Shown here one piece after another: positions 1,311 through 18,742 of a DNA stretch of 64,000 nt. Below the pieces are notes generated by a model. The model ran no database searches. It had not been told where the DNA came from and saw only the letters and a list, made by a program, of their open reading frames with translations. Source of the DNA: Heteronotia binoei (taxonomy: Eukaryota); NCBI RefSeq assembly GCF_032191835.1, contig NC_083237.1, forward strand, positions 1,612,001 through 1,676,000, read 5' to 3'. Positions within the stretch are counted from its first letter, which is position 1; each line of letters opens with the position of its first letter. Position numbers and translations under genes: made by a program.

Positions 1311-1530
1311 GTAAAGATTGGAGAACCCCCAGGATAGATGGCGATGAGAGTGTGGAGGGGCAAGGGGCGAGGAACATGCAAAAACGTTCTTTTGCAGCAA
1401 CAGGGAGCTGCAGAGACAGCTGCTGGAACAGTCCCCTGAGAGAGGACAGGCAAGGTGGGCTGCTCACTCTGCCTGCAGCCCTGCTGGGAGAGGGAAAAGG
1501 GGGGGCTGTGTGTCTCAGACACCAGCTTAC

Positions 1531-4500
1531 CTGAAAGGGAACCTGTTAGCGATGCTGTAGGCCATGGTGCCGGTGATGGCCAGGAGCTCCAGCAGGATAG
1601 AGTTGAAGTTCAGCCCCTCGGCACTCTTGGCCCCCACGATCTTCAGGATCTGGGGAAGCTTCACTGCACAACGGGCAGGAAGAAGCAACAGTTAAGTGCT
1701 CACAAGCCACTCCCACAGCTTCTCTCCGCTACCACCCAACTGTCTCCTCCAGGGGAGAAAGGGCCTAGGATCCTGTTCCTCACCTGGTCAGACAGTAGCA
1801 GGCTTTGCCCCAGAGGAGAAAAGGTTTTAATCCTTTTTACTGTCCAGCCTCATATCTGAGGACAGGTTCATTCTGGGTAACCACCCTCACCATGTTCAAG
1901 CCAAAGGGAGATTCCTGGCTTCCAGATCTCCCTATTGGTTTTGATTATCTGCTCCTTGGCTCAAGAAGAAGACAATCGCAAGATTTATTCCCCGCCCTTC
2001 TCTCTGAATCAGAGACTTAGAGAGGCTCACAATCTCCTATATCTTCTTCCCCCACAACAGACACCCTGTGAGGCAGGTGGGGCTGAGAGAGCTCTCCCAG
2101 AAGCTGCCCTTTCAAGGACAACTTGTGCAAGAGCTATGGCTGACCCAAGGCCATTCCAGCAGCTGCAAGTGGAGGAGTGGGGAATCAAACCCGGTTCTCC
2201 CAGATAAGAGAACTATGGCTGACCCAAGGCCATTCCAGCAGCTGCAAGTGGAGGAGTGGGGAATCAAACCGGGTTCTCCCAGAAAAGAGAGCTCTGGCTG
2301 ACCCAAGGCCATTCCAGCAGCTGCAAGTGGAGGAGTGGGGAATGAAACCCGGTTCTCCCAGATAAGAGTCTGTGCACTTCACCACTACACTAAACTGGTT
2401 CTCAGGTGAATCACTACCTTTTCTTTGCCTACTAAGGGATAACTTGTTAAAATGTCAGTGGGGGTTCGCGGCAGAGGTACTCTCCCCAGGCTCTCCAGAT
2501 GTTAAACACCTGAGGTTCACATGGATTTAGCCTCAGCGTCTGAGGTCTATTTTGAACTGTTGGTAGTTTAATGCTTGAAATTGATCCTCATTGTGAAGGA
2601 TTTCTTGAAGAACAAAGATCCTTTTGGCTGTTGCCCTACAAGAGAGTTGTTAGCCTGCGGAGGGGGTCTCACAAAGTCACACTTGGTATGAGCAACGGGA
2701 GGGGGGGGGACGTCACAAACATTTTTTCACGAACAGAATGCTGGGAGACGTCCTCAGAGGTTAGTTTTCCGTACCCCTCAACTGCGGCAGGTGCGTCTCC
2801 CCCTCCCACTGAGCCTCTCCGGGGCTCTCTAACCTACGTGCAATCCAAGTGACCCTTCTGGCGGGGGAAGGTTTACGTGCTCCTACCCATGAGTGAGCCA
2901 GCAATGATCGCAAATCCCAGTCCCTTGCTGATCAGGATCTTGAGGCATGGAACTAAAAAGAAAAAGAAAGGGGAAAACGTCACTGGCTGCCACTGCTGTT
3001 CTCGACTGACTGTACAGCAACACTGCAAGAGAGGACACAATCCCAGTTTTGCTCATGGCAGCCAAGAAAGAGCAACTCTTTCTCAGGGGTCTCTGGAGGG
3101 ATGCCAGTCTCCGGGTGGAACACAGAGATCCCTGGAATTACAGCACATCTCCAGAGCTCAGTGGACTCTTATGGCATGCACCCCAGTGAAGTCCCTGACC
3201 TCCCCAGGTGCCATCCCTTCATCTCCAGTTTCCCAACCCAGATCTGGCAACCTTCCCATTCCCCACTGTTAGCCTGAGGGACCTGAGAAGCCCAGCTCTC
3301 CCCAGCTTTCCCCTGTGGCAGGACAGGCAGAAATCCAACAGACTGAGGCTTCACCTGCTATATGTCTGCATCTCAGGCTGCTCACCAAAAGCAGTGCCGC
3401 CAGAGGTGGGGCTGAGAGGTACCCCCCCCCCCCCCACACACACACCAGGTTCTGCAATACGAGAACTCGTGGGTGCTCCATGAAATTGCTGAGCAGTCGG
3501 GTTAGAATGGATAAAAGGAAGTCCTTCACCCAAAGGGTGATTAACGTGCAATTCACTGCCACAGGAGGTGGCGGTGGATACAAGCATAGACGGCTTCAAG
3601 AAGGGGTTGGATAAATATCTGGAGCAGAGGTCCATCAGTGACTAGTAGCCACAGTGTGTTGTTGGAACTCTCAGTCCGGGGCAGTGATGCTCTGTATTCT
3701 GGGTGCTTGAGGGGGGGCACAGTGGGAGGGCTTCTAGTGTCCTGGCCCCTCTAATGGATCTCTTGATGGCACTTGGTTTTTTTGGCCACTGTGTGACCCA
3801 GAGTGTTGGCCTGGAGGGGCCACTGGCCTGATCCAACATGGCCTCTTTTATGTTCTTATGTCTGGGGCAGTGACGCTCTGTATTCTTGGTGCTTGGGGGG
3901 GCACAGTTGGAGGGCTTCTAGAGTTCTGGCTCTACTGATGGACCTCCTGACGGCACCTGGTTTTTCTGGCCACTGTGTGACACAGAGTGTCAGCCTGGAG
4001 GGGCCATTGGCCTGATCCAATATGGCCTCTTTTATGTTCTTATGTCTGGGGCCAGTGATGCTCTGTATTCTTGGTGCTTGGGGGGGGCACAGTGGGAGGG
4101 CTTCTAGTGTCCTGGCCCCACTGATGGACCTCCTGATGGCACCTGGGTATTTTGGCCACTGTGTGACACAGAGATCTGGACTTGATGGGCCACTGACCTG
4201 ATCCAACAGGGCTTGTCTTATGAACGAAATAACTCCCATCCTAGCCCACCCCCTGTCCCGGCTGGAGCCCCACAACTAGCCCCTCAGTATGGCTGGATTC
4301 TGGAAGGGATGTGTTGCAGGGCTGCTAATGGGGCGAGATCTGCCCTAACAGCCCACTGGGGCGTCCTTGGAGGGCACACCGCCCAGCCAGGCAGCCCAAC
4401 GCCCAGCCTCAAGTCCCAGAGGCAGCAGGCCGCGGGGAGCCACTTCCGCCTAGAAAGCCCCGCGAGGGGTCGCCACAAGCAACGCAATTGCTGTTTTTAT

Positions 4501-4820
4501 CCTCAGGGAGCAGAAAGACAGCAAGAAACATTAAAAAAGGGAAGCCTGGGGACACTTCCGCCCCGTTCCAACATGGCGGGAAGAGCTGCGGCATCACTTC
4601 CGGCCCGCCTCCTTCCGCCCTCGCCCAAGATGGTGCCCGCCTGCCCTTCCGCCCCGCCGGCGGCGTTGCCATAGCGACGCTAGCTCTCCTGCCCCGGCGG
4701 CCGGGCGGAGGGAGGGAGGGACTCACTGTGCAAGAAGTTGAGCCGCAGGAAGAGCTCGTCGTAGCAGCTCTCGGGGAGGAGATGCGGGACCAGCAGGCCC
4801 TTCGGCGCCAACGACGCCAT
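1531..4820 (-). CDS. MPDU1: Mannose-P-dolichol utilization defect 1 (PQ-loop protein), exons 1-3; remaining exons not found in window
   Basis: Exon1 4820-4727 ([31 protein letters not shown], donor GTGAGT), exon2 2952-2887 (66 nt, [22 protein letters not shown]), exon3 1663-1531 (133 nt, [44 protein letters not shown]). All GT-AG, phases chain in frame, first PQ motif present. In-frame upstream ATGs (4865, 4886) make the exact start uncertain. Confidence 0.93.
1962..2400 (-). mobile_element. tRNA-derived Squam3-like SINE with an internal 79-nt module in three copies
   Basis: A/B-box head (TGGTGTAGTGG; GGGTTTGATTCCC) on minus; ggctgacccaagg at 2138, 2217, 2296. Confidence 0.8.
3440..4220 (+). 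mobile_element. CR1 3' end with ~184-nt 3'UTR unit in three copies
   Basis: ORF2 tail ([22 protein letters not shown]) followed by repeated 3'UTR ending TTATGTTCTTATG. Confidence 0.8.
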
Positions 4821-5130
4821 CTTGGCAAGCGGGGAGAGCCGAGCGGCGGAAGCGCCCGCCTCCATCTCGCCACACCCCGCGCCCATGCGCCCTGAGAGGC
4901 CGCCGAGATCCCCGCGCATGCTCAGACGCCTCCCGATCCCGCCGCGCCCAGCCGCCCGCTTGGTCAGGTAAGTAGGCCGCTTTGCATCTGTGCGCATGCG
5001 CGCTGTGCCTACAGCGGTCCCGACCGTCGCCGAAGGGGGCGCCGCAAAACAAGGCCGTCTGCGCGCATGCGCTGTCCGCTCAGGCCTGCCTGCCTTCCTT
5101 CCCGCCTCCCAGTTTGGCCAAGGGACAAAA
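4400..5130. promoter_or_regulatory. CpG-island bidirectional promoter shared by MPDU1 and the HARBI-like gene
   Basis: Very GC/CpG-rich. NRF1-type GCGCATGCGC at ~4992 and ~5063. YY1-type motifs at ~4816 (AAGATGGCG on minus, over the MPDU1 ATG) and ~5127 (AAAATGGCCG over the HARBI-like ATG). The two ATGs are 310 bp apart and divergent. Confidence 0.8.
4968..5112 (+). other. Predicted 145-nt 5'-UTR intron of the HARBI-like gene
   Basis: Consensus donor CAG|GTAAGT at 4967/4968; pyrimidine tract GCCTGCCTGCCTTCCTTCCCGCCTCCCAG ending at 5112, 17 nt before the ATG. Confidence 0.7.
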
Positions 5131-6479
5131 TGGCCGCCTCATCTCAGCAGCCATCTTGGGCCACCAGCCACAGCCAGGAAGCTCAGCTGCTGGCCACGCT
5201 GGGCCGTGGCACCGTGGCCTTGTGTCTCCTCTACTACGCCCGCCTGCAGCGAGGACGGCGCCTGCGTGAAGCTGCCCGCCGCCAGAGGGTCGCCTCCCAC
5301 CACCGCGCCCAGGCCCGGTCCCGCCAACGCTTCTCCTTGCTGTGGCTCTGCCAGATGCTGGCCCGAGCCCCGGGCACGGCTGGGGCTTGCCAGGAGGCCC
5401 ACGGCGGAGGGGGCAGGATGCCACGCTTGCTGCGGGAGCGGCGCCTGTGGAGCAAAGCCCGGAGCTCGGCCTTCTGGGAGACGGTGCGAGCCAAAGCCTT
5501 CAGCCCGTGGGAGTGGGTCGACAACTTCCGCGTGGCTCCTGCCACCTTCGACTACCTCTGCGCCCAGTTGCGGAATGCCATTCAGCGCCGGGACACTAAC
5601 ATGCGCCGGGCCATCCCAGCAGACGTGCGCCTTGCCATGACCCTCTGGCGCCTGGGGGCCTGCACCGAATACCGGGCGGTAGAGCAGCTCTTTGGCGTGT
5701 CACGCTCCACCGTCTGCAAGATCCTGCGCGACGTCTGCGAGGCGGTCGTGGCCATCCTGACCCCGCTGTACGTGCGCCCTCCGGACCCTGCCGAAGTGGC
5801 TGCCGGGAATGGCTTCCCCCTGCCCCAGCTGGCCGGAGTCCTGGGATCCCTCCACGTGCCCATCCGCGCACCCAATGAAAACGCCGCCGGCTACTACAAC
5901 CGCCACGGCTGGCATTCAGTGGTTGTGCAGGCTGCGGTGGATTCCCGTGGCTGTTTCTGGGATATCAACGTCGGGTGCCCTGGCAGGGTGACAGAGCCGC
6001 AGGTCCTGTGCACATCTGAGCTGTATCAACGAGCTCAAGAGGGTGAACTGTTCCCAGGCGCGTCCCAACCTGTCAGGGGAGTCCAGGTGCCCCTCTATCT
6101 GCTGGGCAGCTGCTCATACCCTTTCCTCCCTTGGCTCATGCGTCCCTATCGCAACGCGGCTCTCACGCCAGCCCAGCAGCGCTTCAACGAGTATGCAGCC
6201 GCTGCACGGACGGTAGTTGGGGTGGCCTTCGGACGCCTGCGAGGGCGTTGGCGCTGCCTCACTAAGCGCAACGATACAGACGTCTCCTTTCTGCCGACCC
6301 TCATCGCCGCCTGCTGCACCCTCCACAACGTCTGCGAGGCCCGGGGCGACGTCTTCCAGTCCGGCTGGATGGAAGAGGAAGAGGAGCAGCTGGAGGAACA
6401 TCCCTTCGATGACGGGGAGGAGGAAGACGTTGAGGCGGTGGAGATCCGGGATGCGCTGGCCTCAGCACTGAGGGGCTAA
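5130..6479 (+). CDS. HARBI1/ALP1-like Harbinger (PIF/Harbinger DDE_Tnp_4) transposase-derived protein, single coding exon, 449 aa from ATG 5130
   Basis: Uninterrupted ORF with Harbinger motifs: NFRVAPATFDYL, RLAMTLWRLG, HTH LFGVSRSTVCKI, YNRHGWHSVVVQAAVD, YPFLPWLMRPY, AFGRLRGRWRCL, ACCTLHNVCE, acidic tail ending IRDAL. ATG context aaaATGG lies 18 nt after a strong acceptor at 5112; the ORF-track start at 5067 is inside the predicted intron. Confidence 0.9.
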   Translation: MAASSQQPSWATSHSQEAQLLATLGRGTVALCLLYYARLQRGRRLREAARRQRVASHHRAQARSRQRFSLLWLCQMLARAPGTAGACQEAHGGGGRMPRLLRERRLWSKARSSAFWETVRAKAFSPWEWVDNFRVAPATFDYLCAQLRNAIQRRDTNMRRAIPADVRLAMTLWRLGACTEYRAVEQLFGVSRSTVCKILRDVCEAVVAILTPLYVRPPDPAEVAAGNGFPLPQLAGVLGSLHVPIRAPNENAAGYYNRHGWHSVVVQAAVDSRGCFWDINVGCPGRVTEPQVLCTSELYQRAQEGELFPGASQPVRGVQVPLYLLGSCSYPFLPWLMRPYRNAALTPAQQRFNEYAAAARTVVGVAFGRLRGRWRCLTKRNDTDVSFLPTLIAACCTLHNVCEARGDVFQSGWMEEEEEQLEEHPFDDGEEEDVEAVEIRDALASALRG

Positions 6480-7885
6480 CTGGAGAAGCGAAGGCTGTGG
6501 AGCCAGTCGAGTGGTACCTCTCGGTGGATTTACGGGGCCGGCGTCTGAGGTTTGCAGCAGCAGGGAAATAAGCCTCTGTGGAATCTGAAAGCCTGCCCCT
6601 CCCTCTGGAGATAGTTTGAGAGGCCTGCAGGCAAACAGCTAGAGTTGAATCCGGTACCACCTTAGATAAGAGCAGAGGAGAAACGCTGCCCCTAAGCATT
6701 ATCCTGCTCTGTTCAAGCTGATAACATTCTGCATCCTGAGCCCCTTCTTGGCAAGATCTGCCTGGGAGAGAAGGACTCGGGGGGGGGGGATCTCCGTTCC
6801 AACTTGTATCTGATGAAGGAAGCTTGGCGTCTGGAAAGCTCATGCCTGGGAAATCTGGCTGCTCTCGCAGGTGCTGCTGGAGTCCCATCTAGCTGAACCA
6901 ATTAGAAGCTTTCGTTTTATCTAGTTTGCATTCCCACCTCCTTGACAGCAGCTCTGCCCACTCATCCTCCCCCCCTCCCGGTACAACAGAGGAGCTGAAG
7001 GTAGAAGGCAAACAGCAGGACCTTCTAAAATGTCCGGAGGGCTTTGGGGGCAGGGGAGCTGGGAGGGACAGGGGGTCTTGTGCCTGGAAGGTACAGAGCG
7101 CTGCCCAGTAAAACGTGTCATCCTTAGAGGAAGAGCTCGTCCCTTGTCTGTCCACTGGAAGCTGCCCCATCCACATTTTTACCTTTCTTGCTCATCAGTT
7201 AATTGGAGCCATTTTGACTGCCAGGTTGAACCTTGGAGTGCTGGAAATTGCCAGAGCCTCTGGGCTTGGGTACCTTTTGCTGACTTCCCACCCTCCCACT
7301 CCCTTTATTCTTTTTGTTTGTAAGTCTCCTTTTGTCATTGTAGAATGATGTATCTTACAGGGGGATGCCGAGTTCTTGAGACTGAGCTGTGAGTTCCCTG
7401 CTGCGCTCTTCTTCCCTCTGAAACAAACTCATTCAGGGGCCTTCAGCAAACCCTTCCTCCTCTTGCAGCCTTGGCCTACCTTGCAGGGCTGTGGTCAGGA
7501 GTCCAACAAAAGACTGGCTGCAAATTGTTCCGACCCCTGAAAGAGGGGCATAAAAGTCAGCTCTTATTATAGATGGTGTTCTACTTAGATGGCATTTTCT
7601 GTTTCTTAGTTTGGCGGGCGGCGGGCAGGAGAAACTGAATAACTTGCAAGAAATACTCAAAAGCCAAAAGTCATCTAATACAAAATACCATTAAAACTCA
7701 GCTAATAAAGAAAGGCAAGCAACATTTTTCCAAAATCACTTCTCAAGTGCTTGAAATAAGACGTAACACAACAGCAGGTATCGTCCTGCTACCTTGGGGA
7801 GAGAATATCAGCGGTTTCTCTGCTGCCACACCCTCCAGTTGCAGGGCTAGCCCACCCTCCCGCATTTGAAAAGCCACCCCTTTGC

Positions 7886-8246
7886 TTAGAAGAAGAAGAA
7901 TTGCAGATTTATACCCCGCCCTTCTCTCTGAATCAGAGACTCAGAGCGGCTCACAATCTCCTATATCTCCCCCCCCCCCAACAGACACCCTGTGAGGTGG
8001 GTGGGGCTGAGAGGGCTCTCACAGCAGCTGCCCTTTCAAGGACAACTCCTATGAGAGCTATGATTGACCCAAGGCCATTCCAGCAGGTGCAAGTGGAGGA
8101 GTGGGGAATCAAACCCGGTTCTCCCAGATAAGTGAGCTCTGGCTGACCCAAGGCCATTCCTGCAGCTGCAAGTGGAGGAGTGGGGAATCTAACCCGGTTC
8201 TCCCAGATAAGAGTCCACGCACTTAACCACTACACCAAACTGGCCT
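7886..8246 (-). mobile_element. Squam3-like SINE
   Basis: Same consensus as the other copies; (GAA)n tail. Confidence 0.75.
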
Positions 8247-8572
8247 ATCCCCCTTGGAGAATGTGGATGCCCCATTTCAAGGCCTTTGGTGGGGTGGAGC
8301 CACACAATGGCCAATGGCTGGGGCTGATGGGAGTTGTAGGCAAAAAACATCTGGAGAGCTACCACTGGCCACCCCTGACCTAAGCGATGATTCAGGCCTC
8401 TTGTGATTGGCAGAGTGGGAAGACCCGGCTGGAGGAGTCCCCTCCACAGGTGCACCAGCACCTCCCAGTCCTGGGCGCATTCCCACAGAAGCCAACCTGC
8501 TCAGCATGGCTTACTCGCAGGTAAGTGTGCAAAGGAGCAATGCCTGCAACCCTGTGCCTACTTACTTGGGAG

Positions 8573-8762
8573 CAACGTTCCCTCTAAGCCGCAGAGTCTT
8601 GTGAGCAAAGAAATCTACTTTGTGAGCTACTGGCGCTAAAGTTGTGAGCTGCATAAATTGTGCTCCGGGGTCCTCCTTCCTGAGCTAAGACAAAAATGTG
8701 TGAGCTGGAGGCTAAAAAATCTGTGAGCTAGCTCACGCTAACTCAGCTTAGAGGGAACACTG
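8573..8762. mobile_element. hAT-type MITE, 190 bp
   Basis: TIR CA(GT/AC)GTTCCCTCTAAGC at both ends; perfect 8-bp TSD CTTGGGAG (8565-8572, 8763-8770). Related copies at ~22417-22612 and ~43840-44040. Confidence 0.85.
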
Positions 8763-9337
8763 CTTGGGAGTAGACCCCAGTCACTTCAGTACGACTGACT
8801 TCTGTGTAATCAGGCAACAGATCCGGGGGGTACAGTCCCTTGCCTGTCCGGCGGAAGAATTAACTCCATGATGGTTGGATCGTCTTGTTCGTGGCTGAAC
8901 AGACGGTGGCTTTGGATCTCTTGCAATACACACTACTACATCTCCCCCCCCCCCCCAAAAAAAAAAAGCAAACCCAACAACAACACACAGATACATCTCG
9001 CTTCCTTTCTTCCTTCAGTTCTTTGAATTGAACAACAAATGCAACGTTGGGATGCATTGAGCGGCTGGAGGGCCTGGAGGCAAATGGGGTCTTCCCTGTA
9101 GCTTTACTGTGGGGTCGGAAGCAGCAGAACACAGTCTGAGTCCAATTGGCGGCACCTTGAAGGCCAACAAGGTTTTATTCAAGGTGTGAGTTCTCCCCTG
9201 CGCATTCACTTCCTCAGAGACAAGGACATGGAAGTCCCCAGTCCATAACATACAGGGTGAGAGTGAGCAGTGAAGCTGTATACAGTATGATGAAGATGTT
9301 TAATAGATTCAGTGACATAACAGGAATAACAAGAAGA

Positions 9338-10171: not shown

Positions 10172-13100
10172 TTAGAGGGTTTCGTACCCCACGTGGCTCC
10201 GCCTCCGTCCCACCGCGTAGGCCACCAGGACGATGACGATGAGAAGGACAATGATCACGATGACGACGATGGGCACGAGGAGTGAACGCCGCTGCTCCTT
10301 ACAGACCTCCGCTGGAAAAGGAAGCAAGGTGTCAGGGAAAAGGAAGGCAGGTCGAAAGGACTGAAGCTTCCCTCTGGCTAATGGCTAGGTTTTCAAAATG
10401 GCGGCCCTGGGAGAGCCAGTCTGTGCTCGGCCCTTGGTGTGTGAGGGGGAAAGAGAGGCCATCAAGCAAGTGCTCCAAGACAGGCTTCTGTAGGAGGGTT
10501 AAAGGTCAGACCGGAAGCAAGGGTTGAGGCTGTTGGGGGAGAGGTCACACCTTAGCCATTGAGATGAGTTTGAAGATTACTGGGTGGCTTGGGCAGAAAT
10601 GAGTCACCTCAACCTCTGAGACAAGGCAGTATTTTCATTGCCGGGATATGTACGGAAATGGAGGGCAGAAGAGACATTCCACGAGGCTGCTGGTGACGCA
10701 GAACTGAAGGGTAGCAAACATTCTGGACGGGGGGGATGAGCGGTGACCGAGCATCAGAGCGGCACCCAGATATGGGTGGGTCTCGCCAGATCTGAGCAGT
10801 CAGGTTGGAACGGATAAAAGGAAGTCCCTCTTCACCCAAAGGGTGATTAACACACGGAATTCACTGCTGTAGGTAGTGGCGGCTACAAGCATAGCCAGCT
10901 TCAAGAGGGGATTGCATAAGCATCTGGAGCAGAGGTCCCTCAGTGGCTATTAACCACAGCTTATCCTTGGGACTCTCTGTCTGGGCAGTGATGCTCTGTT
11001 CTTGGTGCTTGAGGGGAGGGGCACAGTGGGAGGGCTTCTGGTGTCCTGGCCCCACTGATGGACCTTTTGATGGCTCCTGGTTTTTTTGGCCACTGTGACA
11101 CAGAGTGTTGGACTGGATGGGCCACTGGCCTGATCCAACAGGGCTTCTCTTATGTTCTTATGTGACACAGAGTGTTGGACTGGATGGGCCACTGGCCTGA
11201 TCAAACATGGCTTCTCTTATGTTCTTATGTCTGGGGCAGTGATGCTCTGTATTCTTAGTGCTTGGAGGGCAAAAGTGGGAGGCCTTCTAGTGCCCTGGCC
11301 CCACTGATGGACCTTCTGATGGCACCTGGGTTTTTTGGCAACTGTGTGACACAGAGTGTTGGGCTGGATGGACCATTGGCCTGATCCAACAGGGCTTCTC
11401 TTATGTGACACAGAGTGCTGGACTGGATGGGCCATTGGCCTGATCCAACAGGGCTTCTCTTATGTGACACAGAGTGCTGGACTGGATGGGCCATTGGCCT
11501 GTTCCAACATGGCTTCTCTTATGTTCTTATGTGCCACAGAGTGTTGGACTGGAGGGGCCATTGGCCTGATTCAACAGGGCTTCTCTTATGTTCTTATGTG
11601 ACACAGAGTGTTGGACTGGATGGGCCATTGGCCTGATCCAACAGGGCTTCTCTTATGTGACACAGAGTGCTGGACTGGATGGGCTATTGGCCTGATCCAA
11701 CATGGCTTCTCTTATGTGACACAGAGTGCTGGACTGGATGGGCCATTGGCCTGATCCAATATGGCTTCTCATATGTTCTTATGTGCCACAGAGTGTTGGA
11801 CTGGAGGGGCCATTGGCCTGATTCAACAGGGCTTCTCTTATGTTCTTATGTGACACAGAGTGTTGGACAGGCTGGGCCACTGGCCTGATCCAACAGGGCT
11901 TCTCTTATATTCTTATGTGACACAGAGTGTTGGACTGGATGGGCCATTGGCCTGATCCAACAGGGCTTCTCTTATGCTCTTATGTGACACAGAGTGTTGG
12001 ACTGGATGGGCCATTGGCCTGATCCAACAGGGCTTCTCTTATGTTCTTATGTGACACAGAGTGTTGGACTGGATGGGCCATTGGCCTGATCCAACAGGGC
12101 TTCTCTTATGTGACACAGAGTGCTGGACTGGATGGGTTATTGGCCTGATCCAACATGGCTTCTCTTATGTGACACAGAGTGCTGGACTGGATGGGCCATT
12201 GGCCTGATCCAATATGGCTTCTCATATGTTCTTATGTGCCACAGAGTGTTGGACTGGAGGGGCCATTGGCCTGATTCAACAGGGCTTCTCTTATGTTCTT
12301 ATGTGACACAGAGTGTTGGAAAGGCTGGGCCACTGGCCTGATCCAACAGGGCTTCTCTTATATTCTTATGTGACACAGAGTGTTGGACTGGATGGGCCAC
12401 TGGCCTGATCCAACAGGGTTTCTCTTATGTTCTTATGTGACACAGAGTGTTGGACTGGATGGGCCATTGGCCTGATCCAACAGGGCTTCTCTTATGTTCT
12501 TATGTGACACAGAGTGTTGGACTGGATGGGCCACTGGCCTGATCCAACATGGCTTCTCTTATGTCCTTATGTGACACAGAGTGTTGGACTGGATGGGCCA
12601 TTGACCTGATCCAACATGGCTTCTCTTATGTTCTTATGTGACACAGAGTGTTGGACTGGATGGGCCATTGGCCTGATCCAACATGGCTTCTCTTATGTTC
12701 TTATGTGACACAGAGTGTTGGACTGGATGGGCCATTGGCCTGATCCAACAGGGCTTCTCTTATGTTCTTATGTGACACAGAGTGTAGGACTGGATGGGCC
12801 ACTGGCCTGATCCAACAGGGCTTCTCTTATGTTCTTATGTGACACAGAGTGTTGGACTGGATGGGCCACTGGCCTGATCCAACAGGGCTTCTCTTATGTT
12901 CTTATGTGACACAGAGTGTTGGACTGGATGGGCCATTGGCCTGATCCAACAGGGCTTCTCTTCTGTTCTTATGTGACACAGATTGTTGGACTGGATGGGC
13001 CATTGGCCTGATCCAACAGGGCTTCTCTTATGTTCTTATGTGACCCAGAGTGTTGGACTGGATGGGCCACTGGCCTGATCCAACAGGGCTTCTCTTATGT

Positions 13101-16100
13101 TCTTATGTGACACAGAGTGTTGGACTGGATGAGCCATTGGTCTGATCCAACAGGGCTTCTCTTATGTTCTTATGTGACACAGAGTGTTGGACTGGAGGGG
13201 CCATTGGCCTGATCCAGCAGGGCTTCTCTTATGTTCTTATGTGACCCAGAGTGTTGGACTGGATGGGCCAGTGGCCTGATCCAACAGGGCTTCTCTTATG
13301 TTCTTATGTGACACAGAGTGTTGGACTGGATGGGCCACTGGCCTGATCCAACAGGGCTTCTCTTATGTTCTTCTCTCAGAAGCTAATCAGTATCAGCTCT
13401 GTTTAGTATTTGGATGGGAGACCACCAGGGAGGATGAGGGCAGCTCTGCCTCTGAACACCTTGGAGACCCCAAGAGGTGTTGCCATAAACAGAACCTCTC
13501 CACCACCACCACCACCAGGCATCAGTGCCCAAGGGTGCACACGAGGGGGAAGCCTCCCTTTTGGGGGGGGGGGCATACGGCCTCTTTAAAATGATGCAAG
13601 AGTACAGTGGTTGTCTCACCTTCCCCAAATTTTCCACCTTGCAGCTCAAAGGCCTGGACTTGCTCATTCAGGACATGAAGGCGAAAGTCTCCAGCGAGGG
13701 TCAAAGTGCGGTTTCGGCACTGGTAGCTGTGCCCGAGGGAGGCCTCAAACTCTTGGAGAGAGGAAGCGTCTGCTCCAAAGGACATCTCTGGGAAGGGAAA
13801 GGGAGGCCGTGAGGCTCTGGCTGAGGACTGGCTCAGAGGCTGAGTTCCAGGCAGAATCCGGCACCACCGGCTGGCCCCCCAGCACCTCTGTTCAGTGCAG
13901 TAGGCGGTCCGGGGGCTCTGGAGCTGGCCAACCTCAGTTCTGGTGCCCCCCAAGCTTTTAAAGAAAGTGGGTGGGGCTTAGATAGGGTTTCTCCCCAGCA
14001 AATCTTGTGATTGGCTGTGCTGACCTTTTTAAAATGGCAGCAACTACCCTGACAGCAGAAAGATCTTCACTGTACGACTGAAGGTAAGAACTGGCAGCCA
14101 TTTTGTGCCCACGACGCTGTCTCTGAATCCCAAAGGCGCTAGCTGGCTCCGAAAGGTTGAGGAACCCTGGCCTAGTGGCTTGGCTTTGCGCCTAGGAGTC
14201 CCGTGAAGAGATTTTAGGCAATCTCCCAGGCCGACCCCCACCTTACATGGGGATTGTAAGGACGGAATGTGACCAGTCCTTGCTGCAGCCAGTTCACCCT
14301 CTGCATAAAGGAGATTCTTTGGGGCTTGTTGCAGTTCTGCAACTTTTGAGTCCCCCTCTAAATGTGCAAAGGGACAGAAATGAGAAAAGGCTGGGATTTA
14401 GAATCCTTCCAGAGTAGAAAGAAACCCATGCACAGACAACGCTGGAGCAAAATGGGCAGGTTTTTAGGCTCCCCCTGGGAACAGGTAGAGCCGGCATCCA
14501 ACTCAAAGCTCTCAAAGCCGGGCGGAGACCTGCCTGTGGACCTTGCTCTCAAGTGCCTTCAGCCCGTGAACTGTTTCTAAGGGAGGTCAGCTAGCTGATG
14601 CTGGGGGCTGAAGGGCCAGAGATCGAGAGCCAAAGGAGAAGCAAGCAGATCTCGGCGGGCTGCAGTCGGAACCAGAAAGGCCCCCTCCTGGACCGTTCTG
14701 CTCTGCTACGGTTCTTACCCCTCCGCTCCATACGAGTGTTGCAAAAGCATTCTCTCTGGCCAGGCCAGGCAAAACTCCATCCATCCAACAGACTTCTCAT
14801 TTGCAACAAAAGGTGGGGGCACCCTTCCCCCCAAAGCCCCTCACCTGTTGCCTGCATGAACTGGTAGGTCAGGTTGGCCTGGACTCTGCTCAGGTAAGAC
14901 GTCCCTCTGGTTTCATTCTGCGGGAGAGAAATCTGGGTTTTCTTCTGTGGGAGGGTTGGCATCCCGTGCCAGGAATCAAGCATTCTGAAGAGAGCTGCAC
15001 CCAGTGGAGGCGAGGCATGCGTATGAGAGGCCCAGGGCGCTCCCCGGGGGAAATACAGACAGGCCTGATGTTTGGGGGGCGGGGGAGGGAGATGTACAAG
15101 GAGTTGCCTCTTACTGAATCAGACCCCCTCTTGGTCCATGAAAGCGTTGTCTACTCAGATTGGCAGCGGCTCTCTCTCCAAGGTCTCAGGTGGACCTTAG
15201 CCGCAGATGCTGCCGGGGATTGAACCTGGGTCCTTCTGCATGCCGAGCAGAAGTTCTTCCGCTGAGTCATGGCTCCTTCCCAAAGAACACGCAAATGAGC
15301 AGGCTTTACCCTGAGTCAGGCCATCTAGGTCAGTCTTGCCTACTCAGACTGGCAGCGGCTCTCCAGAGTTTCGGGCAGAGAAAGGTCTTTCGTATCATAT
15401 CCTTTCAACTGGAGATGCTGCTGCTGGAGATTGAACCTGGGACTTTCTGCGTGCCAAGCAGAGGCTCTTCCACTGAGCCATGGCCCTCTCCACGGGGAAT
15501 TTGGATTTTAAGCAACGGGATACATTCATGGGGCAAAAGATCGTGGCAGGGAAACGGCAGGCCCCCGGCCAATACTGGTCCTGAGGCAGAATCCCTGGCA
15601 GCCTGAACCCAGAAGGCATCGTTCAGGATGGCGTGGAAAGAGGGTTGTCTGTGCCTGAGCCACGGCTGCCTGCTGAGCTCGCCCTTCCAGCCGCAGACAA
15701 GGCACTTCCAAAGCCATCAGTGAGTGAGTCAGTCTGTGTTCCTTCCCTCTCCACCGGTCCGATGACCTTCCGCGCCCCCAGGCTCACTTGCTCGAGTCAC
15801 CTTCAAGCAGGAATTGTTTTTTGTGGCGGAGCCGGTTGTTGGCTTGAGGCCAGTGAACCTCCAGGTTTAATGGGGGAGCAGTGTAGATTTGGGCCAGTCC
15901 TGACGCAGAAGAAGAGGTTGTGGACTAGCAAGGCCAGGTAGCCAATTTGCCCGGTGACCCCCCGCCCCTCCACTTGAACATGTCTCCTCAGACTCACAGC
16001 CTGGCCAGCCTGCTCCAGGACAGCATGCAAACCCTAGAGTGCCACAGTACAAATCAGTTGCGCAAAAACAAAAAAGCTGTGGAAAAATAATGAACGGCTA

Positions 16101-18742
16101 TCGAAGAAAATTTTTTTTAAAATAAATCAATTTTCCAAAAGCGGTTCACAAATATATAAAGTACAAAGTGCGGAGAATAAAGCTCCCAAGGAATTTCTGT
16201 GCCATGCGGGGCGTTTTGTGATGTTGTCTCTTTGACAAAGGAATCTTCGGAAAAAGTATTCCGGGCGGCTTTACTGTCAGAGGCTACTGGCTGCCCACTC
16301 CCAGTATAAAGCTGAACTGAACGATGCAGCTTTTCTCTTGGCTATTTTGAAAATGAGAAAAATGCTCATGAAATAATCCACCCGGAGGCGGGCGAGTGCT
16401 CCAGAGGCGCTCGAAGTCTGAAATTGACAAGATTGCACGGGAGATTTCTTTGGAACTTTATTCTCCGCACTTTGTACTTTGGAACTGGAGGACTTTTGTG
16501 CATTTTGTAGTAAGATGTATTTGGGAACTGCTTTTGAAAAATGGATTTATTTAAAAAAAAAATCTGCTTGTTTTTGTTTTTGCGCAACTGCTCCGGGATA
16601 GCAACGGGCATCTGAGTCAGGGTGTCTTTTGAAAAAGTCCCCAAGCTCTGTGCCAAGAAAGGGGAAGTTCTGCTGCTGAGATGCCAATTAAGCAGGCACA
16701 CGTCTCGGTCATGCCTTTTGCGGGGTGAGTCAGCAGCCCGGAGGAGGCTGAGAGGCCGGGAGAGGGAGGGGTTCTGGCCTGCCTGGTCTGGAGGAAGTTT
16801 CCCTCTTCCCTGAGCTATCAGGGCTTCCTGGTGAAAGTGATTGGCAAGGCGTCCAAGACCGAAAGTGGGAGGGATTTCCTGTGACCCCACGAACATGTGT
16901 GGAACTCACTGCCACAAGGTGCTGCAATGACCGGTCGCTTGCGGGGCTGTGAAAGGTCTCCATGACTGCTGAAGGAAACCTCCCTGTTGTTCTTGCTGGC
17001 TTTTACGTTTGGCCACCTGGAGACGGGGAGCTGCCATGGGGTGGATCAGACCGTCCAAGTCTGGCTTGGCTTTTCTGATGGTCGGGGGCTCTCCAGGGTC
17101 TCCTGGGTCCTTTTCAACTGGAATACTGCTGCTGGGGGTTGAACTGGGGACCTTCTGCGTGCCGAGCAGATACTCTGCAGCCCCTTCCCTCAATATGCCT
17201 TGAGTCTTGTTTGGGAAGGTGGACTGTAACTGAGTCGGGAAGCAGTTATTCCCGGGGTGGGGGGGAGGCGGTGTCCTTCAGGCCCTTCTGGGGGCACCGG
17301 GGCAGAAGCCCAGCCCCTCACTGTCCCGTCAATACCCAGAGGTTAAGCCGAGCCCTCCTGGCTGTGCCCAAGTGCCAACCATCCAGCTGCGATGGAGAAT
17401 TTCCTCTGCTTCCCCCTCTCCTCCCACCCCCTGTGCATCCTGTCTCTCTCCCCCCCCCTCGCGGTACCTTTTTGAAGACGAAGACAAGGGAGCCCTCCGG
17501 AAAGCGCAGCCGGAGCGTGGCCTCCTGGCTGGAGCAGCCCCCCGAGGTGTTGGTATGGTTGGGCTGCACCGCAAACATTCCCCAGAGCTGGCGGAGGAAA
17601 AGAGAAGGTCAGAACCACCCCAGAGGCCATGCTTGGCACTCCCTCCCGACGTGGTCAGAGCCTTGGTGGCCACGAAGGGCGGCACACGAGACTTGCAGGG
17701 CAGAGAGCACCAGGGGCCGCCTCCTCTACTTCCTCCCCCCCCCAGCATCTTCCTTCCTGCCCCCTGCTTGTCTAAGGGTCTTTCCTTCGCCCACACAGCC
17801 TTTCTCTGAAGGCACCGTTGCTCTAAACTGCTGGGCACCGCCGGTAGTGGAGTCCTGTGCAGACGAGGGGGCCAGTGAGAGGGCAGACACGGAGGCAGAA
17901 CGTCAGGGCAATGGGGGCTGCCCCCTCTGGCCTGGTGCCCACAGTGCCCCAACCTCAGTACCCGGCATTCCTCGCTCAACTGCAGGTGCCCCTTTGCCCA
18001 GCAGAGCGCCTTGACCCATTGCTTCGATTCCCCTCTCGTGCCAGGCCAACCCACAGCCCCTGCCCAGTGCTTACCAATTGCTTAGCCTTGCTGGTGTACT
18101 GGACTTGGAGCTGGAGGCCTGCTACCAGCCGCATGCAGGCGGCGGACCCGTTCCGGACCACGTAATCGCCCACGGCCACAAGGGGTGAGTCTGTGGGCCA
18201 CGGGGCTGTAGTGACGATGCTGGGGTGGGGGGTGGGGGGATGGGGCGTGGTGTGGTTGACTGGCCTTGTCGTGAGAACGGAGGTGGTATGATTGGTGGGG
18301 TGGTGCGTGGTGTGATTGGCCGGACGGCTTGTGGTGTGAAAGGGGGTGGTACGATTGGTGGGGTGGTGCGTGGTGTGATTGGCCGGACGGCTTGTGGTGT
18401 GAAAGGGGGTGGTACGATTGGTGGGGTGGTGCGTGGTGTGATTGGCCGGACGGCTTGTGGTGTGAAAGGGGGTGGTACGATTGGTGGGGTGGTGCGTGGT
18501 GTGATTGGCTGGCAGCGTGGTGTGATTAGCGGCATGTGTCGTGGGATGGTGCGTGGTCTTCGGATGGCGGGTGGTGGACGGTGTCGTGGTCTTGGTAAAG
18601 GAGGGCAGCAGCGTGGCGGCTTTTTTCCTACGGGGGCAACTCGGGTCTGCTGGTTCGATGCCAGAACACAGCGAGTCCCCAGGAGGCCCCGGCCTCTGCA
18701 AGAGCCCCTGCGATGCCGCTTCGTCCTGACTGGAAGCCCAGA
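10172..18742 (-). CDS. CD68: CD68/macrosialin (LAMP family), exons 2-6; signal-peptide exon 1 not located
   Basis: Exon2 18742-18075 (668 nt, CPRRKKAATLLPSFT, mucin domain, start of LAMP domain), exon3 17587-17468 (120 nt), exon4 14917-14845 (73 nt), exon5 13787-13620 (168 nt), exon6 10311-10172 (TM helix plus GYETL* lysosomal GYxxPhi motif). GT-AG with compatible phases; position between EIF4A1 and MPDU1 matches human synteny. Confidence 0.92.
10795..13372 (+). repeat. CR1 3' fragment expanded into a ~2.3 kb minisatellite of 59/67-nt units (CD68 intron 5)
   Basis: Unit TGTGACACAGAGTGTTGGACTGGATGGGCCATTGGCCTGATCCAACAGGGCTTCTCTTA(TGTTCTTA), roughly 33-35 copies; matches the 3' terminus of the CR1 at 57301-59430. 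Confidence 0.92.
16055..16590. mobile_element. Foldback/MITE-like element with ~145-nt imperfect inverted arms
   Basis: Arms 16055-16200 and 16440-16590 begin CAGTTGCGCAAAAAC and share AAAGTACAAAGTGCGGAGAATAAAG in inverted orientation; no TSD recognised. Confidence 0.55.
18287..18510 (-). repeat. Coding tandem repeat, 63-nt unit (ANHTTHHPTNRTTPFHTTSRP), 3 copies plus a partial, in CD68 exon 2
   Basis: 63-nt period read directly (gtgcgtgg at 18303, 18366, 18429). Confidence 0.9.

Follow-up and report, generated by a model that had tools for sequence, protein, structure and literature searches.

The window, a 64,000-nucleotide stretch of Heteronotia binoei DNA, contains a gene derived from a Harbinger transposase at positions 5130..6479, present as a complete single-exon CDS that encodes 449 amino acids followed by a stop codon; it lies on the plus strand, as do all the protein features given below. 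The start was placed at the methionine at 5130, which is shared with the starts of the orthologues; the list of open reading frames gives 5067. The neighbours of the gene are MPDU1 and CD68, and no Myb ORF adjoins it. Its start and that of MPDU1 (ATG at 4820, minus strand) diverge from a GC-rich interval of 309 bp (4821..5129; GC 0.68–0.70), which, given the conserved head-to-head layout, is a putative promoter region common to both genes. As for the hallmarks of a mobile element, no convincing TIRs were found flanking the ORF, only short imperfect pairs that were taken as chance.

Compared with the Pfam profile DDE_Tnp_4 (PF13359), the 449-residue protein scored 96.8 bits (1.3e-27) against a cut-off of 24.8, the match covering residues 240–400 (5847–6329) and profile positions 3–158 of 158. 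This score, which exceeds the curated threshold, assigns the predicted protein to the PIF/Harbinger transposase superfamily. The whole transposase architecture is kept: a long N-terminal helix is followed by a helical region with a putative HTH, then by the RNase H-like core and the acidic tail. The Arg-rich N-terminal helix (residues 15–78; 5172..5363; 13 K/R) was delineated from the AlphaFold secondary structure; its structural matches were coiled coils only, and the modelled helix is a candidate element for partner binding or oligomerisation. The helical region (residues 114–224; 5469..5801) was recognized by its model helices and its conservation, identity reaching 94% to Podarcis and 60% to the caecilian. 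An HTH had been proposed here in a sequence-only reading of this DNA; the region is indeed helical and highly conserved, but the Pfam HTH_Tnp_4 match on residues 167–204 remained below threshold (16.5 bits; cut-off 27). The RNase H-like transposase core (residues 225–404; 5802..6341) was defined by Pfam, AlphaFold and structural matches. Alignment with the orthologues confirmed the earlier statement that the family motif GSxHD (GSVHD) has become GRVTE (5982..5996): its His is T or S in those orthologues that align there, and its Asp is retained in most of them, Glu occurring only in the window and in one other sequence. The two blocks described as kept were found, AFGRLRGRWRCL at residues 366–377 (6225..6260), conserved and seen both in the sequence and in the profile alignment, and CCTLHN at residues 395–400 (6312..6329 in the sequence), whose N400 is invariant in 108 relatives. 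The acidic C-terminal tail, also noticed earlier, spans residues 405–433, of which 14 of 29 are D or E, and is followed by a C-terminal helix (434–449), the two together covering 6342..6476.

Structure prediction of the protein alone, which had been suggested as a check, gave a confident DDE-transposase-like fold (AlphaFold pLDDT 88.8) with the topology beta1-beta2-beta3-alpha-beta4-alpha. The best structural matches obtained with VIA-align were the transposases of piggyBac (Z 9.5), Tn5 (9.0), Tn4430 (8.0) and ISCth4 (7.9). A Foldseek search against the PDB returned nothing at E<=0.001, its best rows being mostly DDE transposases and integrases, and a sequence search of the PDB found no relatives at E<=1. 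As modelled, the core has an RNase H-like, transposase-type fold.

The central claim of the sequence-only reading was that all three DDE catalytic residues are replaced, each at a named codon. These codons are GGA for G239 (5844–5846), aligned with the first catalytic Asp and lying in strand beta1; AGC for S327 (6108–6110), aligned with the second catalytic Asp and lying just past strand beta4; and GGG for G364 (6219–6221), aligned with the catalytic Glu and lying within the long helix 347–373. All three are read in frame with the ORF 5130–6479 (+), and from their positions in the predicted secondary structure we infer that the residues cluster in space. The register was checked in three ways, by a MAFFT alignment of 178 relatives, by a DDE-intact profile HMM and by Pfam DDE_Tnp_4. 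In the MAFFT alignment 75 of the 178 relatives carry D-D-E at exactly these columns, and among the 137 sequences that lie outside the orthologue clade, 96 have the first D, 106 the second D and 100 the E. The HMM, made from the 75 DDE-intact relatives alone, scored the window protein at 428 bits and set G239, S327 and G364 exactly on its D, D and E columns, pairing GaiDgthipi with GVLGSLHVPI, lilGDsAYp with YLLGSCSYP and aRvvVEnAFgrLKgrW with ARTVVGVAFGRLRGRW; posterior marks were at their top throughout, except at one small gap that lies outside all triad motifs. In the Pfam profile, position 2 corresponds to the first D in three DDE-intact relatives, and the window match begins at position 3, that is at residue 240, which therefore puts G239 on the D. 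The three methods agree, and formal alignment places no acidic residues at the catalytic positions, so that the claim is borne out down to the codons. The triad columns lie at the 54th, 86th and 96th entropy percentiles, the Glu column (G364) being the most variable of the three, and their flanks are conserved.

DDE enzymes work by an established two-metal chemistry in which the D, D and E bind metal, and because these residues are replaced the protein would be unable to cut or join DNA. It might be imagined that the protein is still an active nuclease and relies on acidic residues such as D272, D279 or E289 in the vicinity of the former active site, as family-conserved acidic residues persist in the core. 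However, residues of this type accompany the triad in DDE-intact relatives and are thus not replacements for it, and the position of E289 is taken by D, N, Q or H in other orthologues. The canonical positions, moreover, are occupied by Gly, Ser, Pro, Arg or Ala in freely varying fashion, and the GSxHD His is gone; we therefore regard continued nuclease activity as highly improbable.

Forty tetrapod orthologues form one clade in the careful tree (support 100/99), and none of the 41 sequences of the orthologue set, in which the window protein is counted, retains an intact DDE. The first-Asp column reads G in 31, A in 4, T in 4 and S in 2 of them, and D in none; among the orthologues the second reads G, S, P, R, A or C, with D solely in the caecilian. 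At every locus examined in squamates (lizard, snake and amphisbaenian), in the turtle, in the frog Hyla and in the caecilian Microcaecilia, the gene stands head-to-head with MPDU1, and CD68 lies downstream of it at all four amniote loci examined. The order MPDU1/gene/CD68 of Podarcis, Erythrolamprus and Rhineura is that of the window, and the turtle locus reads SOX15-MPDU1(-)/gene(+)-CD68(-). Usable locus records were available for six genomes, and each of these yielded the gene at one place, always in the same position. The gene is thus immobile, syntenic across distant species and transposase-derived, and the best explanation is that its fixation between MPDU1 and CD68 preceded the amphibian/amniote split. 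When turtle MPDU1 and CD68 were compared by tblastx with the pigeon locus, only short matches were obtained, which were read as spurious, and it is the tree alone that makes the bird sequences probable orthologues. No mammalian orthologue was found, the 47 matches coming from squamates, turtles, birds, amphibians and some fish, and in an exhaustive search all top clusters bearing a source name were non-mammalian; these absent database matches suggest that the gene was lost in mammals.

Full-length ORFs are intact in six species, from gecko to pigeon (the window and five others), and the NG86 dN/dS ratios between intact ORFs were 0.09–0.14 among squamates and 0.17–0.39 against turtle or bird. 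Bird orthologues evolve faster (0.29–0.39) and have altered flanking motifs; constraint across the orthologues appears not to be uniform. The ratios point to purifying selection on the protein despite the lost catalytic residues, and evolution treats the three triad positions as free, in contrast to the remainder of the protein, which is under such selection. These data also bear on the possibility of a private decay, in which the window would hold a dying transposase copy or pseudogene, its frame open by chance or by an annotation artefact. Nothing was left in its favour after testing; the 'putative nuclease HARBI1' label hides the triad loss. The absence of an intact DDE from all 41 sequences shows that the substitutions are shared among orthologues, as the earlier reading had asked to be checked, and lends private decay no support; it is refuted by the intact ORFs of six species, by dN/dS of 0.09–0.39 and by the 40 orthologues in a 100/99 clade, the synteny being conserved as well, and we give it practically no credence.

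The triad reads S-D-E in the caecilian, G-P/S-x in frogs and G-G/S-G in amniotes. From this series, loss of the first D appears to go back to the tetrapod ancestor; the other two triad residues, both retained in the caecilian, were lost later, independently and in parallel. The triad loss noticed in the sequence-only reading is accordingly real, but it was stepwise, and the earlier reading has to be corrected in this respect. The orthologues thus show in what order the active site of a transposase was eroded after exaptation. The first Asp is also missing from a group of fish genes labelled 'ALP1-like' (Narcine, Solea, Oryzias and Thunnus), whose triads are G-N-D and G-D-D. These genes are conserved from ray to teleosts, but are multi-exon, with common intron positions, and have other neighbours. 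In a quick tree the ray and teleost clade was nearest to the tetrapod clade (SH-aLRT 97), whereas in the careful tree support for the fish/tetrapod sister grouping falls to 75/4. In view of this support, of the other neighbours and of the introns, we claim neither orthology with the fish genes nor a pre-gnathostome loss of the first Asp. One doubtful possibility is that the tetrapod gene arose as a relocated copy, without introns, of the ray/teleost gene, which has introns and lacks the first Asp; if so, the loss of catalysis would date to early jawed vertebrates.

HARBI1 keeps its DDE and is located elsewhere than the MPDU1–CD68 interval. The term 'HARBI-like', which had been applied to the protein, is an annotation label and does not denote orthology; HARBI1 orthology is improbable, since the gene lacks the DDE, lies at the MPDU1–CD68 locus and has no mammalian match. 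HARBI1, whose partner is the Myb-like NAIF1, is likewise a vertebrate host gene that arose from a Harbinger transposase, and it has the same Pfam domain; it is described as conserved from fish to mammals (PMC9710019, PMC9392472), whereas the window gene has neither a mammalian match nor a DDE. No bona fide HARBI1 was found among the relatives that could be named. The nearest of these all come from animals (sturgeon, coelacanth, cyprinid, killifish and damselfly), the nearest DDE-intact relatives being fish, coelacanth and insect transposases. By these comparisons the gene would be neither HARBI1 nor an orthologue of plant ALP1. It nevertheless resembles ALP1 in being Harbinger-derived, immobile and conserved, with the triad substituted and the fold kept. 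ALP1 has DGA in place of DDE and is part of PRC2; its early-branching relatives still have an intact triad, the loss having come later (PMC4671723), which parallels the caecilian S-D-E versus the amniote G-G/S-G. However, ALP1 loses two triad residues and the window gene all three; ALP1, unlike the window gene, has known PRC2/ALP2-type partners; and the two domestications appear to be independent. Arabidopsis HDP1/HDP2 and Drosophila DPLG are, like the window gene, instances of recurrent exaptation, although in other lineages and as separate events, and in these the transposase has been taken into chromatin complexes, where it acts as a partner without catalysis and, in most cases, beside a Myb-like protein (PMC5339849, PMC9710019). 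A literature search covering vertebrate Harbinger domestications, HARBI1-like and ALP1-like genes and the MPDU1–CD68 locus found no description of the gene, which is apparently an undescribed, independent vertebrate domestication of a known kind. In public annotation it is called 'putative nuclease HARBI1', and 'ALP1-like' is likewise an automatic label; a protein atlas search yielded nothing beyond family names.

The notion of a pseudo-nuclease that keeps the Harbinger fold, put forward in the sequence-only reading, is thus upheld in that the triad is replaced in register, the gene is single-copy, syntenic and under purifying selection, and the predicted fold is confident. It is very probable that the gene is conserved, catalytically dead and selected for a non-catalytic role. 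The best overall explanation, which we consider likely, is that a PIF/Harbinger transposase was exapted as a host gene, the product of which would most likely be a non-catalytic nuclear adaptor. With the triad lost and the fold kept, the protein would work by binding and not by cutting, and the analogy with ALP1/ALP2, HDP1/HDP2 and HARBI1/NAIF1 suggests that binding is the property under selection. The HTH/core surface would contact DNA or chromatin, and the N-terminal helix would bind a Myb/SANT-type partner; in the systems described, the Myb partner contacts the N-terminal end of the transposase (PMC9392472). This specific mechanism, an adaptor working with a Myb partner, is proposed by analogy and only tentatively.

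Alternatively, a protein that retains the architecture for DNA binding and oligomerisation without catalysis might serve as a dominant-negative brake, protecting the genome by poisoning the transpososomes of active Harbingers or by occupying their ends or their Myb partner. This seems distinctly unlikely. Conservation at the same place in squamates, turtles, frogs and the caecilian outlasts the activity of any single transposon family, and the slow, steady divergence (dN/dS about 0.1) bears no sign of an arms race. Furthermore, relatives outside the orthologue clade, DDE-intact transposases included, share 27–44% identity with the window protein in the alignment, which makes mixed complexes or end recognition unlikely.

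A sub-case of the preferred adaptor explanation is that the protein is an accessory subunit of PRC2 or of another chromatin complex, joined in the manner of ALP1 or HDP1 through a Myb-like partner. The common superfamily, the similar triad loss and the similar retention of the fold speak for it by analogy (PMC4671723, PMC7282668, PMC5339849), as does the existence of the vertebrate Harbinger-derived Myb genes MSANTD1-4, for which the literature examined names no transposase-derived partner (PMC9392472). However, the gene was probably domesticated independently from animal elements and is probably not an ALP1 orthologue, and mammals, in which no orthologue of the window gene was found, still have the MSANTD genes; this sub-case is therefore unlikely. 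A broader combination, which we offer as a doubtful possibility, is that this is a second ancient Harbinger-transposase gene of amphibians and sauropsids, lost in mammals, whose product partners one of the MSANTD1-4 Myb proteins. Catalysis would then have been given up step by step, and the gene together with an MSANTD protein would form a DNA-targeting chromatin module.

In two papers of 2022 (PMC9392472, PMC9710019), HARBI1 is listed as the sole vertebrate gene to derive from a Harbinger transposase. The gene analysed here adds a second one, which is at least tetrapod-old, strongly constrained and provably without a catalytic triad. It would represent a natural case of separation of function, because its function would need the fold and not the chemistry. 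The naming of such proteins as 'putative nuclease HARBI1' is flagged as a systematic annotation error. The gene is present in tractable species (Xenopus, chicken and Anolis), so that its function is directly testable.

Expression would probably be broad, driven from the CpG-rich promoter common to the gene and MPDU1. Near-identical RNA-seq contigs tile positions 5170–7811 at low depth and are absent from bins 4334–4667, within an MPDU1 intron; RNA contigs of an intronless gene at such depth may represent DNA carry-over. Logan contig L009, which holds a full orthologue, was rejected as a transcript, being collinear with MPDU1 exons across an intron and thus genomic-like. In line with purifying selection, 15 of the 17 listed differences of a related species' RNA contig (X4) fall in third codon positions, and the remaining two alter CTG Leu codons synonymously by a C-to-T change at the first position.

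The open frame at 5067–6479 on the + strand of the ORF list reduces to a single coding exon, 5130–6479, encoding 449 amino acids, since orthologue starts match the methionine at 5130. The product matches the Pfam PIF/Harbinger transposase domain DDE_Tnp_4 with 96.8 bits (cut-off 24.8) and Plant_tran more weakly; no solved structures related to it by sequence were found. The sequence-only reading had proposed that its three catalytic residues are replaced while the fold is kept. Direct reading of the codons gives G239 (GGA, 5844–5846), S327 (AGC, 6108–6110) and G364 (GGG, 6219–6221), all on the + strand, and three independent routes agree in placing them on the columns of the first Asp, the second Asp and the Glu, respectively. 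In a MAFFT alignment of 178 relatives pooled from both protein searches, D-D-E occupies exactly these columns in 75 sequences; among the 137 outside the orthologue clade, the first column holds Asp in 96, the second Asp in 106 and the third Glu in 100. A profile HMM built from the 75 triad-intact relatives alone aligned 395 residues of the window protein with 428 bits and top posterior marks all along, save one small gap outside the three motifs, and its consensus (GaiDgthipi / lilGDsAYp / aRvvVEnAFgrLKgrW) sets D, D and E over G, S and G. Finally, the first Asp corresponds to position 2 of the Pfam DDE_Tnp_4 profile in three intact relatives, and the local match of the window protein opens at profile position 3, residue 240, which puts G239 on the Asp.

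The change of GSxHD to GRVTE was also borne out by the orthologue alignment: in the orthologues aligning there, Thr or Ser takes the place of the His, and most keep the Asp, Glu occurring only in the window protein and one other sequence. The AFGRLRGRWRCL and CCTLHN blocks are both present, as is the acidic tail (14 of 29 residues are Asp or Glu). The putative HTH region is conserved and helical in the predicted model, and its match to Pfam HTH_Tnp_4 is below threshold.

A word-indexed protein search returned 47 relatives, none of them mammalian, the close ones coming from geckos (Euleptes, 93%), lizards, an amphisbaenian, snakes, turtles, birds, a caecilian and frogs. The tetrapod sequences form one clade (support 99 with FastTree, 100/99 in a careful IQ-TREE analysis), and the gene holds the same position in every locus that could be read. 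In the window it lies between the exons of MPDU1 (~1527–4818) and CD68 (~10172–18250), neighbours being named from Pfam families (PQ-loop, Lamp2-like, HMG box) and gene order. The sea turtle order is SOX15, MPDU1 (−), orthologue (+), CD68 (−); MPDU1/gene/CD68 recurs in Podarcis, Erythrolamprus and Rhineura, and in Hyla and Microcaecilia the orthologue stands head-to-head with MPDU1. An intact triad is found in none of the 41 sequences of the orthologue set. The first position is Gly in 31, otherwise Ala, Thr or Ser, and never Asp; the second is Gly, Ser, Pro, Arg, Ala or Cys, with Asp in the caecilian only; the third is Gly, Ala, Gln, Lys, Arg, Pro, Met, Val or Asp, with Glu in four sequences. 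By group, the series reads S-D-E in the caecilian, G-[P/S/A]-x in frogs, G-G-G in turtles, [A/T/S]-[R/G/C/A]-x in birds and G-[G/S]-[G/A/E] in squamates. Orthologues therefore share the loss, and a private decay of the gecko copy is ruled out by the tetrapod clade, the common locus and the lack of any intact triad. Most simply read, the series places loss of the first Asp in the tetrapod ancestor; the second Asp and the Glu would have gone later, independently in frogs and amniotes, because the caecilian retains both of these and amphibians are monophyletic.

Coding sequences are intact in all six species extracted (gecko, Podarcis, Erythrolamprus, Rhineura, Lepidochelys and Caloenas), and Nei–Gojobori dN/dS is 0.09–0.14 among squamates and 0.17–0.39 in comparisons with turtle or pigeon; a pseudogene is refuted. 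Bird orthologues evolve faster (Caloenas nicobarica, dN/dS 0.29–0.39 versus reptiles) and show changed flanking motifs, H242 becoming Arg and SYP after the second triad position becoming GDP or RDP; at the Caloenas locus MPDU1 and CD68 were not confirmed as neighbours. The former catalytic columns fall at the 54th, 86th and 96th percentiles of column entropy within the domain, while their immediate neighbours G236, G326, P331, A366 and L370 are nearly invariant, and conservation is equally high in the helical/HTH region and in the core (94% and 94% identity to Podarcis, 60% and 61% to the caecilian). This pattern argues that selection keeps the fold and surfaces, not the chemistry. In the block at 6312–6335 (residues 395–402), N400 never varies among the 108 aligned relatives, whether their triad is dead or intact, and C395, H399 and C402 each recur in at least 90% of them, which suggests that the block is kept for a purpose other than triad catalysis, perhaps structural or metal-binding.

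An AlphaFold model with the 108-sequence alignment as input (pLDDT 88.8, pTM 0.77) comprises a 64-residue helix (residues 15–78), a low-confidence linker, a helical region (residues 114–224) and a β1-β2-β3-α-β4-α core. G239 lies inside β1, S327 just past the last β4 segment and G364 on the long helix 347–373; as assigned from secondary-structure positions, the predicted sites are the canonical D/D/E places of RNase H-like transposases. Foldseek gave no match at E ≤ 0.001, its top rows being mostly DDE transposases and integrases. A full VIA-align scan matched piggyBac (Z 9.5, 235 aligned), Tn5 (9.0), Tn4430 TnpA (8.0) and ISCth4 (7.9) across residues ~127–414; the N-terminal helix matched generic coiled coils only.

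In DDE enzymes, three carboxylates hold two metal ions. Since Gly, Ser and Gly replace them here, at sites that vary freely, catalysis by the window protein is excluded with high confidence, and residual catalysis via other residues is very unlikely. The protein still has its helical/HTH region and core surface, both conserved, together with the acidic tail and an N-terminal helix rich in Arg. In Harbinger systems, according to the passage of PMC9392472 that cites Sinzelle 2008, a Myb-like protein attaches to the transposase at its N-terminal end and supplies DNA specificity and nuclear import. Two dead plant Harbinger transposases are subunits of chromatin complexes: ALP1, with the triad DGA, of PRC2 (PMC4671723, PMC7282668), and HDP1 of a histone acetyltransferase complex (PMC5339849). 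By analogy, the window protein might serve in the nucleus as a non-catalytic adaptor alongside a partner of Myb/SANT type, which we tentatively consider the likeliest of its possible roles. That it acts as a brake on active Harbingers seems unlikely, as fixation at one locus across lineages far outlasts any one transposon family and identity to relatives outside the orthologue clade, intact transposases included, is only 27–44%.

The gene is not a mobile element, having no flanking terminal repeats, no linked Myb ORF and one syntenic position. Nor is it HARBI1, as far as triad, mammalian presence and named relatives can tell: the triad is absent and there was no mammalian hit. Orthology with plant ALP1 is unlikely, because the nearest named triad-intact relatives of the window gene are animal sequences, namely multi-copy transposase ORFs of sturgeon, coelacanth, cyprinids, killifish and damselfly; the names 'ALP1-like' and 'putative nuclease HARBI1' were assigned automatically. 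Two papers of 2022 name HARBI1 alone as transposase-derived in vertebrates (PMC9392472, PMC9710019), and our literature searches found no description of the window gene, although public annotations do predict it, with misleading names. Dead domesticated Harbinger transposases are already known as a kind.

A clade of ray and teleost 'ALP1-like' genes also lacks the first Asp (G-N-D in Narcine, G-D-D in teleosts). Unlike the single-exon window gene, these are split into three or four coding exons and have other neighbours; their intron positions are common to them, near residues 260–270 and 300 in Solea, Narcine and Thunnus. Their placement as sister to the tetrapod clade has SH-aLRT 97 in a quick tree and only 75/4 in a careful one; the tetrapod gene might be their relocated intronless descendant. 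The fish gene, too, appears to be an old Harbinger-derived gene with impaired catalysis. Four further relatives (P0061, P0043, P0041 and P0065) form a separate clade, D-D-E in birds and turtles and G-D-E in a caecilian, whose 90% cluster counts 103 members spread across birds; this seems to be one more Harbinger-derived host gene, conserved in sauropsids and amphibians and separate from the window gene. A single-locus 'ALP1-like' gene of Asterias rubens/A. amurensis (several isoforms, G-G-D) may be an independent echinoderm domestication.

In two RNA-seq runs of one study, near-identical contigs tile 5170–7811 at depth 2–6; depth is zero in bins 4334–4667, within an MPDU1 intron, and a 1.1-kb contig ends on MPDU1 exon 1 (4727–5011). 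A third run, from another species, gave contigs ~90% identical; in one, 15 of 17 listed differences fall in third codon positions and the other two are synonymous first-position C-to-T changes in CTG Leu codons. These data fit transcription at a low level and a long 3′ UTR, and are not proof, because no intron interrupts the coding sequence and the support consists of contigs. Within 4720–5130, the start codons of MPDU1 (4820, −) and of the window gene (5130, +) are separated by 309 bp at GC 0.68–0.70, into which the MPDU1 exon 1 contig extends as far as 5011. A donor-like CAG|GTAAGT (~4966–4973) and a pyrimidine tract with AG ending at 5112, both on the + strand, would fit a candidate 5′-UTR intron, across which no spliced read was seen; similarity to other squamates 5′ of the ATG begins at 5111. 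The intervals 4000–4333 and 7841–8842, with summed contig depth of 1e4–6e5 in all four RNA runs, other species included, and many variant contigs with internal joints, behave as abundant interspersed repeats.
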